64,000 nt of DNA. Source: Andalucia godoyi And28. Its lineage: Eukaryota; Protista; Jakobida. The notes under the pieces were generated by a model. That model worked only from the letters and a program-made list of their open reading frames with translations, did no database searches and had not been told where the DNA came from. Both the position numbers and the translations under genes were made by a program. The stretch covers positions 311,356 to 375,355 of the forward strand of contig VRVR01000016.1 in the NCBI GenBank assembly GCA_009859145.1, written 5' to 3'. Shown in pieces: positions 49,291-58,952 of this stretch. Positions within the stretch are counted from its first letter, which is position 1, and each line of letters begins with the position of its first letter.

Positions 49291-49709
49291 CTTTTCTTCT
49301 TATTCTTGTTCTTCTTTTTTTTTTCCTTCGTGTTTTTCTTATCTTGTTTTCACCCCCCCCAGCCTCTCTTTTCCCCTCCTTCAATTAAATTCTTCTCTGT
49401 GAAGCCACCACCCACTACAATTCTGATGAAAAAGAGAGAGTGAGCAAGCATCTGTGTTTCGGATTCGCAGAGGAGGGAAAAAAAACCCAACCAAAGGACA
49501 CCCAGTTGCGTGGAGGCGGGGAAAACACCGAAAAGGACTTGAAATGGGTGCTGTAGAGTCAATTGAAGCAACAGCTGATGTTGCACACCCGAGATGGCAA
49601 CTGCCGAGCATCTCTCATACGTTTGCAACGTGCCGAATGCCCGGTGCCAAAGGGAGTGTTTGGGTGAGAGAGGGGCTTTTTTAAATTTTTTTTTTTTGGA
49701 GTTTTTGTG

Positions 49710-50282
49710 ATGGGCTCGGGTGCATCGAAAAAGACGGGTGGGCAGCCAGTAGTGCTGGTAATTGGGCTGTCGTATTCCGGAAAGCGCGCACTGATCAACC
49801 GGCTGTGTTACGACCGGTTTGTTCATGTTGGGACTACGGCAGATGACGCTCCTGTGGGTGCGCTGGTCGGAACGTATGTTCCGACATCCGTGGTCTTTTC
49901 CAAACACACAATGTCGCACGAACAGAGGCAGAGTGCACGAGACTTGAAGCAGTCGCTCGTGCTGCATGTTGTGGATGCAGCGGACAAGTTGCGAAGAGAA
50001 TTTGCACTGTCGCTTCATGATCATTGGATCAAGCACGCACCGAAGCACGCCGTGCATTGCCTGGTCGTCACCAAAGCAGATGCAGTAGACGTGGACTGCG
50101 ACGCTCTAGTACGGACATTCTCAACACTTACGGGTTCGACATTCTCGAAATTGGTTGCAGTCTCGGCGAGCGATGGTGCGGGGATTGCTGATCTTGCAGC
50201 CTTCCTTCGATTCACGTTTCCCTCAACAGCATCTTTACGCCAACCCAAGGAGACTTCCCAGGTCATGCATGCCGAACCATAA
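49710..50282 (+). CDS. Degenerate Arf-like small GTPase (putatively myristoylated)
   Basis: MGSGAS (G2/S6), VLVIGLSYSGKR (G1), YVPT (G2), LHVVDAAD, VVTKAD (G4), VSASDGAGI (G5); no DxxG (G3). Confidence 0.6.
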   Translation: MGSGASKKTGGQPVVLVIGLSYSGKRALINRLCYDRFVHVGTTADDAPVGALVGTYVPTSVVFSKHTMSHEQRQSARDLKQSLVLHVVDAADKLRREFALSLHDHWIKHAPKHAVHCLVVTKADAVDVDCDALVRTFSTLTGSTFSKLVAVSASDGAGIADLAAFLRFTFPSTASLRQPKETSQVMHAEP

Positions 50283-50568: not shown

Positions 50569-52212
50569 CTAGTCATGTTCGGGAGATTTGAATTTGAGAC
50601 CGACATTCTCGGGAACAAGATATGCGTTCTTGATCGTCTTGGACATCGCCTTGGCCTTCTCGACGTCTGCCATGGCCTGGTACACCGCTTTGGCGTCGGC
50701 ACCCGCAAATTCCTTGATGACTTCGAAAATCTTGCGTTGTTCTGCAGCGCTGGCTTCTGCCTGGGCCTGGGCTTCCTTGACGAGATTCTGCTGACGGATT
50801 TCAACCAGTTTACGCGTCTCCGTTTCCACACGAATTTCACGACTAACACGCTCCAGTGCAAGATCCGATTCGGCCTTTTCTTTGAGCATTTGGTTGGTAC
50901 GATCCGTCGTCTCCTTGACGTAGTTGTCGAGAACGAGCTGGATGGTCGGGTTTGCACACGTGATGGAGCCGAGTTGCAGCGAAATCAGTTTCAATCCTTT
51001 TGCTTCGAAGAAATCCGGGGCTACGCGTTCGCACACATCCTGCAGAATCTGCGGAATATTGCTGAACACCTTGCGATGCTCCGCCACGGCAACCTGCTTG
51101 GCAACTTCAGATTTCAAGAAATCGGTCATGATCGTCAGATACACATCTCCAATCATGCAAAAGTGCGATACATCGCAAATGTCGTACGCAAGCGACATCT
51201 GAACTTCCATGAGCACATTGTCCGCAGACCGGAACGTCGATTGCATCGAAAACCGGTTGTTTTTCATGTTCAGTCGCTGGACAGTTTTTCCAGTCGGAGC
51301 CTGGAAGTCAATGAACTTGTCAAACGGCCCCAGGAAGAACGTGCGCGTGCTTGCGTCGTCGTGTTTCTTGATAAACCTCTCTCCTGAAACGTTGTTGAGG
51401 ACCACTGCAAATTCATTGATCTCCAAACTGACAACCGGTGCGACCTTGATGACCACTTCGTCGATGTCGGGGATGAAGCGCTGCGGCTCAGAGATCATCC
51501 GGATTGACCCGTCCGTGATGCTGCGAACGTGCAGGCACTGGACCTTCGTAACCTCGTAAGCGTTCAGAGGCGTAAACACAGCTGCACGGACCGGTCGTCC
51601 GGCCGCATCCCGGTCAATGTAGTCCTCGTACGGATCTGGGATGAACGTGGCGGGCCCAACCACCTTGCGGTACGACTGTTTCGCACGGTGGTACAAAAAG
51701 CAGTACTGCGCTGCTTGCAGCGTAATGCACTGCTCCGGAGCCCCAAACGTCTGGTACGGCTTTGGAGTGTACATGCACGGTCCAACGACGATGTCGACCG
51801 ACGAGTCCTGGTTCGTAACCCGCAGGAAATGGTTCATTGGAACGGACGGTTTCGTTGTCACCTGGCCAACTCTGTCGTACGGAGACGAAAGCTTGATCTT
51901 ACCCGGACCTGAAACGATGCGCACTTCGTCTGTCGACCAGTCCTTCAGAGGCACATACTGCGACGAGTCCAGAACGATTTTGTGGAACAAACGGGTCTTG
52001 TACAGTGCAGGGCAGCATGGCACACAAAACCACGTCGGGCCGTCTTTCAGATACCGCGTTGTGAAGCTCTGGATAATGGCTTGCTCATTCTCGTCGGAAT
52101 TGTAGAGCGAGCAAATAAAGGGAACACAGCAGCAAAGTGACGCATCCCGACCACGTTCAAAAACATCTGTGAATCCGTAGTCAGTTCCTCCTGCCAGGAA
52201 ACTGCTGTTCAT
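50569..52212 (-). CDS. SPFH/Band-7 protein containing about five major-vault-protein-like repeats
   Basis: Repeats of the form L-x3-Q/H/E-Y/F-x2-L/V-x7-R-x-V-x-GP-x2-F/Y-x-P-x-PY, then FRSADNVLMEVQMSLAYDI (SPFH/MVP-shoulder-like), a short coiled coil and terminal AYLVP. Confidence 0.75.
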   Translation of the reverse strand: MNSSFLAGGTDYGFTDVFERGRDASLCCCVPFICSLYNSDENEQAIIQSFTTRYLKDGPTWFCVPCCPALYKTRLFHKIVLDSSQYVPLKDWSTDEVRIVSGPGKIKLSSPYDRVGQVTTKPSVPMNHFLRVTNQDSSVDIVVGPCMYTPKPYQTFGAPEQCITLQAAQYCFLYHRAKQSYRKVVGPATFIPDPYEDYIDRDAAGRPVRAAVFTPLNAYEVTKVQCLHVRSITDGSIRMISEPQRFIPDIDEVVIKVAPVVSLEINEFAVVLNNVSGERFIKKHDDASTRTFFLGPFDKFIDFQAPTGKTVQRLNMKNNRFSMQSTFRSADNVLMEVQMSLAYDICDVSHFCMIGDVYLTIMTDFLKSEVAKQVAVAEHRKVFSNIPQILQDVCERVAPDFFEAKGLKLISLQLGSITCANPTIQLVLDNYVKETTDRTNQMLKEKAESDLALERVSREIRVETETRKLVEIRQQNLVKEAQAQAEASAAEQRKIFEVIKEFAGADAKAVYQAMADVEKAKAMSKTIKNAYLVPENVGLKFKSPEHD

Positions 52213-52815
52213 TCTTCCTTCCGTTCCACCCAACTTGCTCCGTCAAAAAATACTAGCGCGGCTTAAGCAGAGACGTAAACGCTCATATGAAACGGGGAAA
52301 CTGCAGAAAGAAAAAGAAAGAAAACCCCCCACCCTGGAGATGACCAAAGACGAGCAGATGGGGGAAGCGTGCAGTCTGCGGCAAAAGTCGCCGTTTTTCT
52401 TTTTTTGCACTACAGGCGCGGCATACGGTGCTAGCGTCAGCTAAAACATATGAAGGAAGTTTACTACTACTACTTGTGATCACGATACAACACTCACAAA
52501 ACAAACACGAAACATGAATAGCCACCAATAAACATCAACACATCACAAAGAAAACATACGGATGTTGGGCGGGAAAGAAAAAATCTGAGAGAAAATAGCA
52601 ACAAAAATTCGAGAGAGCTACTTTAGTTATTACGACAAGTGGTGCTGGAAACTTGAAAGTTGAAGTTTGAGATTTGTCCGACTCCCGACTGAAGCTGGAT
52701 GCAGGACGTCGTCGCTTCGTTTTGTTTCGATTTCTTTGTTGGTGGTGGTGTTTTTGTTTTTCCAGGGACGCATACCGCGATCACGAAAAAGAAAAAAAAA
52801 CAAGACAAGACAGAC

Positions 52816-52863
52816 AAAACAAAACAAAACAAAACAAAACAAAACAAAACAAAACAAAACAAC
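52816..52863 (+). repeat. (AAAAC)n microsatellite
   Basis: Visible tandem pentamer just upstream of sppA. Confidence 0.9.
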
Positions 52864-52896
52864 AGCAACAAAAAACGAGTGGATTCTTCCTGGAAG

Positions 52897-54816
52897 ATGT
52901 TCGGTCGACTTTCCAAGATTCTGGTTGGAGGAGCAATTGTTACGGGTTTTGCAGGTCAGTACTATGCAAAGCGCCAGAAAGAAGAGTACGAGTCGCGGCC
53001 GTGCCTGCTGGAAGTAGACTTGACAGCCACGTTTGTGGAGACGCGGCCGACGAACCCAATCAAGCGGATGATGTCTGCGAAGAATCCTGCTTTTGCAGAT
53101 CTTCTGTATGCGCTGAACTCTGCTTCTCTTGACAAGAGCATCGAGCTTGTGATTCTGCGAGTCGGGCCCTGCTCCTTAGGTCTTGCGCAGATCCACGAAG
53201 TCCGCGAGGCAATCAGTAAGCTGAAGGCTGAAAGGAAAAAGGTCGTCGCGGTGTGCGACTCCATGGATTCTACAAGATCATATTATCTCGCCAGCGCTGC
53301 GTCTGAGATTTCGGGATCCGAAAAGGGTGATTTTGTGGTGAATGGATTCGCTGTGGAGTCGCTGTTCTCGAAGCGGCTGCTCGATCGTCTTGGAATTGAC
53401 GTGCATGTGGAAAAGAGAAAGGAGTTCAAGAGCGCAATGGACATGATTTCCGAATCCGAAATGACGGAGCCGGTGCGTCACAATCTTGAAAGTCTGCTGG
53501 TTTCGTTTGCGAACCACGTTTCCGAGAGCATTTCGGCAGACCGCGATGTGGATGTGTCCCTTGTTCAAAAAGTGATGGGTCAAGGGTATTTGAATATGAT
53601 GGAAAGTCATGAGAAGGGACTTGTGGATCGCACCGAGCCGTCGTTTGTGACTGCAGAAAACTGGACTCTCATCATGAAGAAGAATGGCCGGAAGCACGCT
53701 CGGATGTCCTTGGCGCGATATCTGAAGAAGCTGAACCGTATCGATTCGAAGAAATTCACAGAGACGGGGGCTGCTTCTCGCTACTGGATTTGTTCAGATC
53801 CGCGGTTGCTGGTTGCGAACGACTTCTGGACAGCCTTCAAGTTTGGAAAGGACGATGAAAAGGCAAAATCCGCCGAGGACGCTAAGAAAAATTCTGCTGG
53901 ACGAATTGCGGTCATGACTCTTTCCGGAGCCATTATGCGGGATGTGGATGAGCGAAATCCCTCGCAGTACATTTCGGATGTTGCTGTTTCCAAGGCGCTG
54001 TTGGATGCTGCAAAGGACGTTTCCATCTCCGCGGTGGTGATGCGGGTTGACTCCCCAGGCGGGTCGTACATTGCGTCTGAAAACATCGCGGCTGCCATGC
54101 GGCGGGTGCGTGCAGAAGGAAAGCCAATTGTGCTGCAGATGGGGAATGTTTGCGCCTCTGGTGGATATTACCTCGCAGCGGAGTCTGACTATGTCATTGC
54201 AGCTCCGCTCACGATTACGGGGTCTATCGGTGTGATCGCAACCAAGTTTGCGATCGCGTCTGCACTTGGTCTTCACGACATCAATGTTGCGCGCGTGCAA
54301 ACGCACGAAAATGCGGCTGCTTTCGAGTCTGTTATGTTTCCTCTTTCCCCGGTTCAAAAATCCATGCTCAAGAATCGCATTGATGAAATTTATGGCGACT
54401 TCGTGCAGCATGTTGCCAGGGGTCGCAAGCTGCCCTTAGCGCAGGTTGAAGCGTTTGCAAAGGGCCGTGTATGGACCGGAGAGCAGGGCTTGCATCTCGG
54501 ACTTGTTGACGCTTTCGGAGACTTGTATTCTGCAATTCAAATTGCCAAAGACAGGGCTCTCAAGCCGACGGCTACCCCTGTCGCATTTCCCTATCCAAAA
54601 AATCCCGTGCAGGTCTTTCTTGAAGAACTGACTGGCGAGGACGCGGGCTCAGGCGAGCTCTCTCGGCCGCTTGGGGCGTGGATCCGCGAAGCCATCCTTG
54701 ACGATCTGGAACAATCTTCGGCGGTTGCCCGCGTAATCTCTCGTCACGCCCACTTGTATGAGCGCGAGGCAGTGCTCGCATATTGCGAAGACGTGGATTT
54801 AAACAAATTTACTTGA
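52897..54816 (+). CDS. sppA: Signal peptide peptidase A (protease IV, S49, tandem 67K type), likely mitochondrial
   Basis: LGLAQIHEVREAI, YYLASAA, EFKSAMD (catalytic Lys), VMRVDSPGGS, CASGGYY (catalytic Ser), TITGSIGV, KGRVWTGEQG. MFGRLSKIL start followed by a hydrophobic anchor. Confidence 0.9.
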   Translation: MFGRLSKILVGGAIVTGFAGQYYAKRQKEEYESRPCLLEVDLTATFVETRPTNPIKRMMSAKNPAFADLLYALNSASLDKSIELVILRVGPCSLGLAQIHEVREAISKLKAERKKVVAVCDSMDSTRSYYLASAASEISGSEKGDFVVNGFAVESLFSKRLLDRLGIDVHVEKRKEFKSAMDMISESEMTEPVRHNLESLLVSFANHVSESISADRDVDVSLVQKVMGQGYLNMMESHEKGLVDRTEPSFVTAENWTLIMKKNGRKHARMSLARYLKKLNRIDSKKFTETGAASRYWICSDPRLLVANDFWTAFKFGKDDEKAKSAEDAKKNSAGRIAVMTLSGAIMRDVDERNPSQYISDVAVSKALLDAAKDVSISAVVMRVDSPGGSYIASENIAAAMRRVRAEGKPIVLQMGNVCASGGYYLAAESDYVIAAPLTITGSIGVIATKFAIASALGLHDINVARVQTHENAAAFESVMFPLSPVQKSMLKNRIDEIYGDFVQHVARGRKLPLAQVEAFAKGRVWTGEQGLHLGLVDAFGDLYSAIQIAKDRALKPTATPVAFPYPKNPVQVFLEELTGEDAGSGELSRPLGAWIREAILDDLEQSSAVARVISRHAHLYEREAVLAYCEDVDLNKFT

Positions 54817-56807: not shown

Positions 56808-58352
56808 TCAATTCCCTGTGGAAATCGACGATCCAACCTCGACTTTTGGATCTAGAACTTGAAAGTACCATTCTTCAAAGGCTGAATACCCTGCTGGGTT
56901 AAACTTTGTGATCCTGCGGCATTGATAAAGTATCCATTCACCTGCCTTTCGAGATCCTCGAAACATGCGGCCAATCTTGGCCTTTTGCAGGACCATCGCA
57001 TCGAATATGTCGTGAAAGAACCACATGGTGTCCTCGATGTGAATAAACGCAAACTTGTCTCCGCCAAGTCCGAGAAGCGCTTCCGCCTCTCCCATGGAAC
57101 TGCATTGCAGCACGGACAATGCTTCTACATTCACACGAACCGTCATCGATCCAAGACCATGGTACCAGCACGAAACAACGCCGAAAAGATCAGAAGCCAC
57201 GGAATTCGCTGGGCAATGATCCTCCATACGAGGCACATCAGTGCCGACAAACATCTTTGCATGTGCAATCGCATCTCTGGAGCAAAGCTCGGTCGCCATC
57301 AGCTCGATTTCGTCCAGCATTGGCTGAAAGTACTCTTTTTTCCCAGATTTTGCAAAGTCGGCAACGACATGCATCATCAGCTGATAAAGCCGCCCTTGAT
57401 ACGAAACCTGGCCACGCAGATCTGCAGGAAGTGCATTCCACCTGGCTCGAATGACTGAAGTGTAGGACGGCAAGTGCGTCGTCCGGATAATCAACAGCGG
57501 ATCCGGACAGGAAATTTTCAACTCAATCGGTCCACCAATCGGCTGTGCCAGCTTGCACTGGTTGTTGGTGTCGCTGGCAGTGTCATTGTGCTGGATGATG
57601 CCATTGCTGGGGTTATTGTTCATGGCGTTCCCGTCCGGGCTGAGCACATTCCGAGATGCTTGCGCATTCGTCTTAGGAGAGCCTTGTGCGGCTGAGACGT
57701 GCGTATTAGACGACGCCGAAGGCAGGGAACTGACAGAAGATGGAATGGCGACGTCAGAAGACACGCTTGTCCGACGTGGACCGTCGAAATCCGGATGAAT
57801 TGGAAGAATATTACTTCCGGACGCCGTTTTTCCAAATGAAGGGCCTCCAATGCTCTCCGATGGAGACGTGATCTGTATGCTTCCAGCCGGCGGTGTCTGG
57901 AAATTCGAAATCATCTGATTTGCCAGCACGCCCATCGGATGATGGAGAGCACTAGGCGCCCATTGCAGATGACCAAGGTGGTTCTGGAACTGCCCATTAG
58001 AAAATGGAAAAGAAGGCTGCAGAGCAGAAACTGAATGAATGCTAGAGCCCGTATAGTGCTGCGTCGGAAAGCCTCCAGCACCGGCGGAAACATAGTCTGA
58101 CGACATGGCAGACCAGTCTCGCTTCTTGGAAATGTCCATTGTTTGGCGTCTCACCTTTGCACGGAATGTAAATTGCGGATCCGATTGACCTCCCTCAGCC
58201 GAATGCTGCTTATCGCAATCCAACCCTAACCGCGAGCATCGAAAACACGGTCGGTCGTCCGAGCAGGCCGTCTTTGCCTTCTTGCACGCGGAACAGGCGC
58301 TGCGGACGCGGATGTGCCCGGTCATAGACTGCTGGGCTGTGGATGCGTTCAT
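56808..58352 (-). CDS. Zn(II)2Cys6 binuclear-cluster transcription factor with C-terminal PAS-like region
   Basis: ACSACKKAKTACSDDRPCFRCSRLGLDC (six Cys); the C-terminal VRVNVEALSVL...FIHIED...WYFQVL reads as PAS-like. Confidence 0.85.
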   Translation of the reverse strand: MNASTAQQSMTGHIRVRSACSACKKAKTACSDDRPCFRCSRLGLDCDKQHSAEGGQSDPQFTFRAKVRRQTMDISKKRDWSAMSSDYVSAGAGGFPTQHYTGSSIHSVSALQPSFPFSNGQFQNHLGHLQWAPSALHHPMGVLANQMISNFQTPPAGSIQITSPSESIGGPSFGKTASGSNILPIHPDFDGPRRTSVSSDVAIPSSVSSLPSASSNTHVSAAQGSPKTNAQASRNVLSPDGNAMNNNPSNGIIQHNDTASDTNNQCKLAQPIGGPIELKISCPDPLLIIRTTHLPSYTSVIRARWNALPADLRGQVSYQGRLYQLMMHVVADFAKSGKKEYFQPMLDEIELMATELCSRDAIAHAKMFVGTDVPRMEDHCPANSVASDLFGVVSCWYHGLGSMTVRVNVEALSVLQCSSMGEAEALLGLGGDKFAFIHIEDTMWFFHDIFDAMVLQKAKIGRMFRGSRKAGEWILYQCRRITKFNPAGYSAFEEWYFQVLDPKVEVGSSISTGN

Positions 58353-58952
58353 TCTCCAGGTACGCGATTCGAAGATACAGACCAAGAGAGGGGAAAGAAA
58401 AAAAAAGAATTTTTGACGTTAAGTAACAATTGCAAAACCAACAAGCAAACGCAAATAATCGACAAGCCTAATCGGAATTTTTTACAGCGCCAAAAAGAAA
58501 TGATAAATTTAAATTAAAAAAACTCCGGCAGTCGGCACCCTTTTTCTTTTTTGGGCTGGGTGGGTTACAGTAGTTGGCAGTCCTCTGGCAAAGGACTGTG
58601 AGGGCGCGAGAGATCGCGATTGACTGGGTGCACAGAAAAAGAAAAAAACGAAAAAGAAAAAAAAGAGATTTAAGACGGGACTCTGTCGGAGATCCGCAGC
58701 AGTCTGTGTATACGTTCGGGCCACCAGTGAACTGTTCAATGTTCATGTGTGCAAATGAGTGGCGCGAAACAGAGATTGAGCGAGCGTAAAATAAAAAAAA
58801 AAGAACGGAAGACCCGCCCCAACAGGTCCGGCGTTCGAAAGAAGCACTTCTTCTTGAGGTCAAAAATCTCACAGATTCCATCCGTGCTTTTTTTAATATT
58901 ATTTTTCCGCAGAAATCAAACATAACATTCGGCCGACCTGTCCTTCTGTGGT

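Follow-up and report, generated by a model that had tools for sequence, protein, structure and literature searches.

The MVP-like gene and its domain organization

We describe a gene of the jakobid Andalucia godoyi And28 which lies on the minus strand of a 64,000-nucleotide stretch of contig VRVR01000016.1 (this whole stretch is called the window in the following) and which codes for a protein related to the major vault protein (MVP) within the SPFH superfamily. The reading frame comprises 547 codons and is uninterrupted from its first ATG to the TAG stop codon. The deduced protein consists of six MVP-type repeats, R1–R6, an SPFH (Band 7) domain corresponding to the MVP shoulder and a single long helix; a leader and a cysteine cluster precede the repeats and a short tail follows the helix (Table 1).

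Table 1. Position of the MVP-like gene and of the parts of its product in the window, with the evidence on which each part was delimited (AF2, AlphaFold2 model; pLDDT, predicted local distance difference test)
Feature	Residues	Position in the window	Strand	Evidence and remarks
Whole gene, 547-aa MVP-like/SPFH-superfamily protein	1–547	50569–52212	(-)	ATG at 52212, stop codon TAG at 50571–50569
N-terminal leader	1–25	52138–52212	(-)	Predicted disordered; pLDDT <50 for residues 1–31
Cys cluster 1 (LCCCVPFIC), CCCxxxxC, putative S-acylation site just before R1	26–34	52111–52137	(-)	Sequence, Cys enrichment, position
R1, degenerate MVP-type repeat	36–77	51982–52107	(-)	Beta strands 34–77, pLDDT 80–96; hhalign
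Cys cluster 2 (FCVPCC), in the R1 hairpin loop	62–67	52012–52029	(-)	Sequence
R2	78–122	51847–51981	(-)	hhalign 97–99% probability to R3–R6; AF2 strands
R3	123–160	51733–51846	(-)	hhalign
R4, with a longer loop at 196–216	161–216	51565–51732	(-)	hhalign; AF2 strands
R5	217–258	51439–51564	(-)	hhalign; AF2
R6, ends in the family-conserved FFLxP motif	259–312	51277–51438	(-)	hhalign 96–97%
SPFH (Band 7)/MVP-shoulder domain	313–421	50950–51276	(-)	AF2 alpha/beta 319–419; profile; Foldseek
Cap-helix-like single helix, 105 aa, Ala/Glu/Lys-rich	422–526	50635–50949	(-)	AF2; composition
C-terminal tail with conserved motif AYLVPENVGLKF	527–547	50572–50634	(-)	Alignments; low pLDDT in the monomer model

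The gene had been singled out in an earlier note, made from the letters of the sequence, as coding for a stomatin-type SPFH protein with vault-like repeats inserted. The short motifs on which that description was built are all found in the translation, namely the two cysteine motifs of Table 1, ENEQAIIQ at residues 41–48, FRSADNVLMEVQMSLAYDI at residues 326–344 and YLVP at residues 529–532. The description itself is imprecise, as the family to which the protein belongs is nearer to MVP than to stomatin (see below).

To detect the repeats in the sequence a profile–profile comparison was necessary; a BLASTP self-comparison gave no repeat signal beyond the identity match. With hhalign all pairs among R2–R6 are aligned with 96–99% probability (E 1e-9 to 1e-19), and the segment 36–77 (R1) is aligned with 85–95% probability to R2, R3, R4, and R6 and with 24% to R5. 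The five repeat motifs quoted in the note do lie in tandem, within residues 79–298, but the number of repeats is six and not five. What had been taken for a separate stomatin-like segment at the N-terminus is in fact the degenerate first repeat. When compared to the PDB sequences, a profile of R1, which is very short (39 positions), found neither stomatin nor HflK nor MVP, the best match being ubiquitin with an E-value of 0.59. At the other end of the repeat array, F292, F293, and P296 of R6 are near-invariant across the family, and in the comparison of the family profile with the PDB sequences the R6 segment aligns to the MVP repeats ahead of the shoulder.

The coiled coil of about 90 residues proposed in the note exists as a long helix, although its length is rather 105 residues. 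This region aligns with the cap-helix region of MVP up to about MVP residue 782. A counterpart of the cap-ring/cap-disk domain of MVP was not found, and 21 residues remain after the helix. These carry the motif AYLVPENVGLKF, which corresponds to the family-wide C-terminal consensus LYxTPxDVNL and which, by analogy, is a candidate for an apex beta-strand.

Cysteines are concentrated at the N-terminus: seven of the 15 cysteines of the protein fall within residues 26–67 (binomial p = 6e-5). A transmembrane (TM) helix is not present in the protein, since the highest hydropathy of any 19-residue segment is 1.67 and this segment is located inside repeat 6, a beta repeat. Thus, any membrane binding would have to be achieved by a lipid or peripherally. 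A direct comparison with a relative from Andalucia godoyi (P0002, see below) reveals that the leader motif F-x-DVFE-x-G-x-DAS is common to both proteins.

Homology to MVP and SPFH proteins

Searched singly, the protein does not match the Pfam models Vault, Vault_2 to Vault_4, MVP_shoulder, and Band_7 at E ≤ 10, nor was there a relevant match to any other model of Pfam or NCBIfam. The direct assignment by Pfam which the earlier note had envisaged was thus not obtained, and the matches came at the level of the family instead. Weak similarities to RgpF, DUF5798 and 2-hydroxyacyl-CoA lyase were discarded as noise in the helix region. A PLAC8-like or another cysteine-rich N-terminal domain was considered as well and gave no Pfam match at E ≤ 10, and a match to OSTalpha with an E-value of 1.8 reflects merely a common cysteine-rich stretch. 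With phmmer and the PDB sequences, the single protein gave a marginal match to the R1–R7 fragment of murine MVP (3gf5, whole-sequence E 0.015), in which residues 124–176 (R3) are aligned to MVP residues 14–68 (R1). Queried with the single protein, a word-indexed search for homologues matched just two fragments from Andalucia godoyi; with alignments as queries it gave the protein itself or Andalucia sequences, perhaps because words of the coiled-coil region took up all of the 8000 candidate places.

When all of 1.84 billion cluster representatives were searched exhaustively with HMMER, 224 relatives passed E ≤ 1e-3, and 112 of these passed E ≤ 1e-10; their identity is about 20–27%, and most have 450–850 amino acids. 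Pfam domains were counted in 53 of the relatives (10 of these were also scanned singly), and here the expected models do appear, with 45 of the 53 proteins positive for Band_7, 31 for Vault_3, and 13 for MVP_shoulder. A family profile of 148 members searched against the PDB sequences matched MVP with an E-value of 1.9e-48, whereby profile positions 139–542 are aligned to MVP 296–782, that is the late repeats, the shoulder and the cap helix. The same profile matched the crystal structures of stomatin SPFH domains with about 1e-7 (profile positions 311–417) and QmcA and HflK with 3e-6 to 7e-3, again in the SPFH region.

An AlphaFold2 monomer model was built from the alignment of the 148 sequences. 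The model is an extended rod with a mean pLDDT of 89 and a predicted template modeling score (pTM) of 0.64. Residues 34–315 form all-beta repeats, residues 319–419 an alpha/beta domain and residues 422–526 a single helix; the confidence is low for residues 1–31 and 532–547. When the model was compared with the PDB using Foldseek, MVP structures ranked first (E 3e-21 to 1e-15), with the R1–R7 crystal structures of MVP at around 1e-10 (2e-10), followed by prohibitin, HflK/C, stomatin, erlin, QmcA and flotillin cages (1e-9 to 1e-6). The SPFH domain is superimposed on 4fvf and 3bk6 with a template modeling score (TMt) of 0.7–0.8. The comparison of a predicted monomer with MVP, flotillin, and HflK/C that the note had proposed thus came out with the MVP repeat fold and with MVP ahead of the membrane-bound cages.

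The assignment of the protein to MVP and SPFH proteins is made on the family-level and structural evidence. On this evidence the family is a genuine relative of MVP in the SPFH superfamily, with stomatin at a greater distance than MVP. The combination of vault-type repeats, SPFH/shoulder domain, and shortened cap helix proposed in the note is borne out. The blank Pfam result, together with the fragmentary gene models of the Andalucia relatives, might also be taken as a sign of an annotation artefact, a decaying gene or a chance reading frame. We consider this very improbable, as the frame is open over the full 547 amino acids, both halves of the protein are 53–62% identical to Andalucia proteins, the fold is predicted with confidence from residue 34 to residue 526, and the family motifs are kept through to the C-terminus.

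Relatives and their distribution

Close relatives of the protein number just two, both of them fragmentary gene models from Andalucia godoyi: ANDGO_02694 (P0002), which matches the N-terminal half with 53% identity, and ANDGO_02723 (P0003), which matches the C-terminal half with 62% identity. The last ∼55 residues of P0002 do not match and are apparently out of frame, and P0003 begins inside the SPFH domain. Probably the pair is a mis-predicted or split gene, or it represents two paralogues. The further eukaryotic members that could be given a name come from the diplonemids Rhynchopus, Diplonema and Sulcionema, from a sequence labelled "Hpha", which we take to be the diplonemid Hemistasia, from the amoebozoan Trichosphaerium and from the dinoflagellate Polarella glacialis. 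The Polarella protein is of the TM type (see below) and is annotated as "Band 7 domain-containing protein".

A scan of the GTDB representative genomes with five closer sequences as query revealed 64 bacterial loci with relatives. They belong to Chloroflexota (including Anaerolineae and Herpetosiphonaceae), filamentous cyanobacteria, Sericytochromatia, Riflebacteria, and Cloacimonadota, and the proteins have 457–560 amino acids. The similarity to the bacterial proteins can be detected directly: residues 100–543 align to a Herpetosiphonaceae protein with a BLASTP E-value of 9e-35, and phmmer gives 1e-29 to 1e-31 for P0016 and P0010, of which the former is 99% identical to an Anaerolineaceae locus. 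The N-termini of the bacterial proteins are short and hydrophobic (e.g., MFFYFL and MFLPGIYFL) and are neither TM nor lipoprotein signals. Across the 64 bacterial loci no conserved neighbor genes and no NfeD-like partner were found, and the genes stand alone; the sole recurrent neighbor "cluster" turned out to be an antisense reading frame inside the gene itself.

Some members depart from the common layout. In a sub-clade of proteins starting with Met-Gly (P0004, P0013, P0014, and P0021) the start of the cap helix contains 30–80 extra coiled-coil residues (alignment columns ∼815–880); the length of the roof or helix therefore varies within the family. Two members, P0070 with 3381 and P0091 with 1525 amino acids, are fused to large extra regions, and single members are fused to TPR_10/TPR_12, NHL, zf-CCHH (PBZ), or C1_2 domains. 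These fusions hint at cargo-binding or signaling modules on a cage subunit.

The N-terminal rim and the candidate membrane anchor

The earlier note had proposed a palmitoylation-type membrane anchor at the N-terminus. We surveyed those 93 relatives whose N-terminus is complete and whose first repeat is aligned, and in 71 of them a membrane device is located directly before R1. Three types can be distinguished: 30 relatives start with Met-Gly (MG), 24 of them with a cysteine at positions 3–10, which is the classic myristoyl plus palmitoyl signal; 12 have an N-terminal cysteine cluster; and 29 have a TM-like hydrophobic helix. No such device is found in the remaining 22, the bacterial type among them. 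The anchors are usually found 7–11 residues before R1, and in the MG-type relatives R1 usually begins 7–11 residues past Met1. The distance from CCCxxxxC to R1 in the Andalucia protein is that of the MG(C) motif to R1 in its relatives. In addition, at least two cysteines in the R1 hairpin loop are present in 19 of the 42 lipid-type relatives versus two of the 51 others (Fisher p = 2e-6, uncorrected for phylogeny). Cys cluster 1, the cysteines of the R1 loop, and the leader motif are all kept in the Andalucia godoyi relative, whose cluster reads MCCCIPLCLSC. In a rough neighbor-joining tree, which has no support values, the protein is found on a long branch as sister to the MG/Cys-type clade. 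The comparison thus lends strong support, at the level of sequence, to the proposed anchor of the palmitoylation type. The gene codes for a divergent eukaryotic member of the known short MVP-like/Band 7 family, equipped with a probable lipid anchor.

Proposed assembly

The structures of related proteins might give a hint how the protein is assembled. All structurally characterized proteins in which a long helix and then a C-terminal strand follow an SPFH2 domain form a ring or cage (PMC13100048, PMC12915596). In canonical SPFH proteins the membrane motif precedes the SPFH domain and it is with its open rim that the half cage sits on the membrane (PMC13100048), and the C-terminal strands build apex beta-barrels in SPFH cages as well as in the vault (PMC12915596). 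As the solved proteins of this kind form domes or cages and carry their membrane motif at the N-terminus, we suggest for the Andalucia protein a dome whose rim is fixed to the membrane. Many copies would assemble side by side by way of their repeats, shoulders, and helices to a homo-oligomeric dome, as in MVP and SPFH cages. The open N-terminal rim would be held on the cytosolic leaflet of a membrane by S-acylated cysteines of CCCxxxxC and FCVPCC. The six repeats and the shoulder would form the wall, and the 105-residue helices would form the roof, which the C-terminal motif would close. In this way a half-vault bound to the membrane would arise around a patch of it, comparable to stomatin or flotillin cages but with a taller wall and lumen.

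From the comparison of the sequences we infer, with good support, that the protein would form a membrane-attached half-vault. For the whole picture, in which a short MVP-like SPFH protein builds a membrane-anchored half-vault dome, we see a reasonable probability. Acylation, oligomerization, orientation, and a role in microdomains or in sequestering are the parts of this picture which we infer from known cages and from the relatives.

Several points weigh against such a dome. The protein has neither the MG start nor the TM helix of its relatives but a leader of 25 residues instead. Cys cluster 2 is located inside a confidently folded repeat and could be structural or metal-binding. The bacterial relatives have no obvious anchor in their N-termini, so that anchoring is not a family-wide property, and the co-occurrence of cysteines in the R1 loop with lipid-type N-termini was calculated without taking the phylogeny into account. 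In the literature no experimental evidence of acylation, membrane binding, or oligomerization was found for any member of the family. Finally, the single report of a contact between vault and membrane in situ describes the vault the other way round, its cap end facing the membrane (PMC13100048).

Some of these points would also fit a soluble mini-vault, that is a free particle in the cytosol, either with two halves that meet at R1 or as a free half cage, in which the cysteines would serve metal binding, disulfide formation, or redox sensing. The missing MG start and TM helix as well as the bacterial relatives of the same architecture without anchors speak for it. Moreover, the nearest solved relatives by sequence and by fold are the MVPs, short MVP-like proteins of Naegleria were modeled as vault-forming by Daly et al. 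(PMC3595041), and an Asgard MVP with five repeats was modeled as a closed cup (PMC12962969). On the contrary, the eukaryotic relatives have myristoyl/palmitoyl-type or TM anchors 7–11 residues from R1 and these would sterically oppose a waist-to-waist dimerization. The cysteines of the R1 hairpin track the lipid-type N-termini, and the C-terminus has no MVP cap-ring/cap-disk domain. We therefore regard a soluble mini-vault as unlikely, though as a serious alternative to the membrane-anchored dome.

A monomer, a small oligomer, or a filament is also conceivable, for example a membrane–cytoskeleton linker in which the repeats are a spacer. The monomer model does have the form of an extended rod, and its pTM is 0.64 despite a pLDDT of 89; besides, fibril-like assemblies in vitro have been reported for some SPFH domains (PMC9157467). 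Yet the rings and cages formed by all characterized proteins with this order of domains (see above) speak against a scaffold of this kind, and conservation of both the C-terminal motif and the helix extends over the family, as would be expected of an assembly interface. Such a non-cage scaffold appears improbable to us.

Evolutionary implications

How the vault functions and where it came from have long been open questions. The family described here is large, with no fewer than 224 clusters at the 50% identity level, and it has no name; those members that bear an annotation go under "Band 7 domain-containing" or "HflC" or are listed as hypothetical. Its eukaryotic branches have, besides the vault repeats, membrane anchors of the classical kind at the rim equivalent to the vault waist. 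On the side of the vault, it has been pointed out that its shoulder, helix, and cap are similar to the SPFH cages bound to membranes (PMC12915596).

If members of the family form domes on membranes, they would represent a concrete intermediate for the evolution of the vault from SPFH cages, and the SPFH cages of membrane microdomains would be extended to much taller enclosures. Tentatively, one may go further and ask whether lipid- or TM-anchored half-vaults, standing with the N-terminus down, have been overlooked across supergroups (in jakobid-like, diplonemid, dinoflagellate, and amoebozoan lineages) and whether they are a structural and evolutionary bridge from SPFH cages to the free vault, which would then have arisen by loss of the anchor of the dome and by joining of two domes rim to rim. 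This is possible but doubtful at present. If the protein forms a soluble mini-vault instead, it would be one more divergent member of the known short MVP-like proteins.

Genomic surroundings

The window is a gene-dense segment of a eukaryotic chromosome with coding regions on both strands and ordinary surroundings. Among its genes are those for Sec61 alpha, an actin-like protein, the alpha subunit of the signal recognition particle receptor, ALG6/8, Dis3/Rrp44, one BRO1/ALIX and one PHD/EPL1 protein, a Zn2Cys6 factor, and an S49 peptidase. No vault-associated genes were found among them, the neighbors being unrelated housekeeping genes, and the window contains no tRNA genes.

Further features of the surroundings were noted in passing. 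Tail to tail with the MVP-like gene, on the plus strand at 49707–50282, is an open reading frame of 191 codons which starts with MGSGASKK, a start of the myristoylation type, and contains a P-loop-like motif, GLSYSGKRAL. Judged by these motifs it looks like a small GTPase; in Pfam it has no match at 1e-3. On the other side an A/C-rich tandem repeat at 52740–52860 (plus strand), read as KTKQNKTKQNKTKQN, is located in the 5′ part of a long open reading frame (52699–54816) and upstream of its S49 (SppA-like) peptidase domain. Probably the true start of the peptidase gene is a downstream ATG, and the KTKQNKTKQNKTKQN repeat is intergenic or part of the 5′-untranslated region. The gene at 56808–58385 (minus strand) codes for a transcription factor domain with a Zn(2)-Cys(6) binuclear cluster of the fungal type, here in a protist genome.

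Comparison with known systems

The nearest known proteins are the short MVP-like proteins. Daly et al. (2012/2013) described two MVP-like proteins of Naegleria gruberi, D2W0Z9 with 530 and D2V5B9 with 559 amino acids, as "considerably shorter" and with fewer repeats, and reported bacterial MVP-like proteins, among them A9AUD4 of Herpetosiphon, which is annotated as band 7 (PMC3595041, PMC3762200). Bacterial MVP-like proteins with Band 7 domains were also reported by Sokolskyi in 2019 (bioRxiv 10.1101/872010). The Andalucia protein resembles this short MVP-like/Band 7 family in size (457–560 amino acids) and in the succession from a reduced set of vault repeats through a Band 7/shoulder domain to a coiled coil; for the bacterial branch there is direct homology, as given by the BLASTP match to the Herpetosiphonaceae protein, and the likeness to the two Naegleria proteins is drawn from their published descriptions. 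The Andalucia protein differs in being too divergent for the Pfam models, and the bacterial proteins have neither its cysteine-rich N-terminus nor the lipid or TM anchors of its eukaryotic relatives.

MVP homologues with five repeats have recently been described from Asgard archaea and modeled as a small closed cup (Nat Microbiol 2026, PMC12962969). Going by this description, they likewise have a reduced number of repeats, a shoulder and a cap helix. They differ from the Andalucia protein in being archaeal, and no membrane anchor has been reported for them.

The earlier note had conceded that the protein might simply belong to an already described bacterial or protist family of the same architecture. 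This is largely so for the order of repeats, SPFH domain, and helix: the core of the short vault-like architecture is already known. The N-terminal anchoring of the eukaryotic branches is undescribed in the literature searched, that is in open-access papers and preprints on vault-like proteins, SPFH proteins, and membranes. In particular, myristoylation is not mentioned in PMC3595041, PMC3762200, and bioRxiv 10.1101/872010.

With MVP (∼860–890 amino acids; PDB 4V60, 4HL8, 9BW5) the Andalucia protein shares the order of tandem repeats, SPFH-like shoulder, and long cap helix. The canonical vault is a free 78-mer made up of two halves and goes together with vault RNA, TEP1, and PARP4. However, MVP has nine repeats instead of the six found in the 547 amino acids described here. 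In human MVP the helix-cap region comprises residues 647–814 (PMC13347060), whereas the helix of the Andalucia protein has ∼105 residues, and in MVP the helix is followed by the cap-ring/cap-disk domain, in the Andalucia protein by ∼21 residues. A further difference concerns the N-terminus. In the vault R1 makes the waist contacts which join the two halves (PMC13347060), and a membrane motif has not been described for MVP or the vault (PMC13100048); the Andalucia protein has a cysteine-rich N-terminus at this place.

The SPFH cages formed by stomatin, flotillin, HflK/C, QmcA, prohibitin, and erlin have in common with the Andalucia protein the succession of SPFH region, long helix, and short C-terminal strand, the strand being a candidate one in the Andalucia protein. 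By sequence the Andalucia protein is nearer to MVP than to any of these canonical SPFH proteins. The cages begin with an N-terminal membrane device, and the Andalucia protein has its cysteine clusters there as a putative anchor. In flotillin and stomatin this device consists of acylated cysteines or hydrophobic hairpins (PMC13100048). In the cages a single SPFH1 plus SPFH2 unit follows right after the anchor. In contrast, six repeats of together ∼280 amino acids are placed between the putative anchor and the SPFH2-type domain of the Andalucia protein, and the repeats of MVP are said to be homologous to SPFH1 (PMC12915596). Thus, given the six repeats in this position, a wall much taller than that of the known SPFH cages is predicted.

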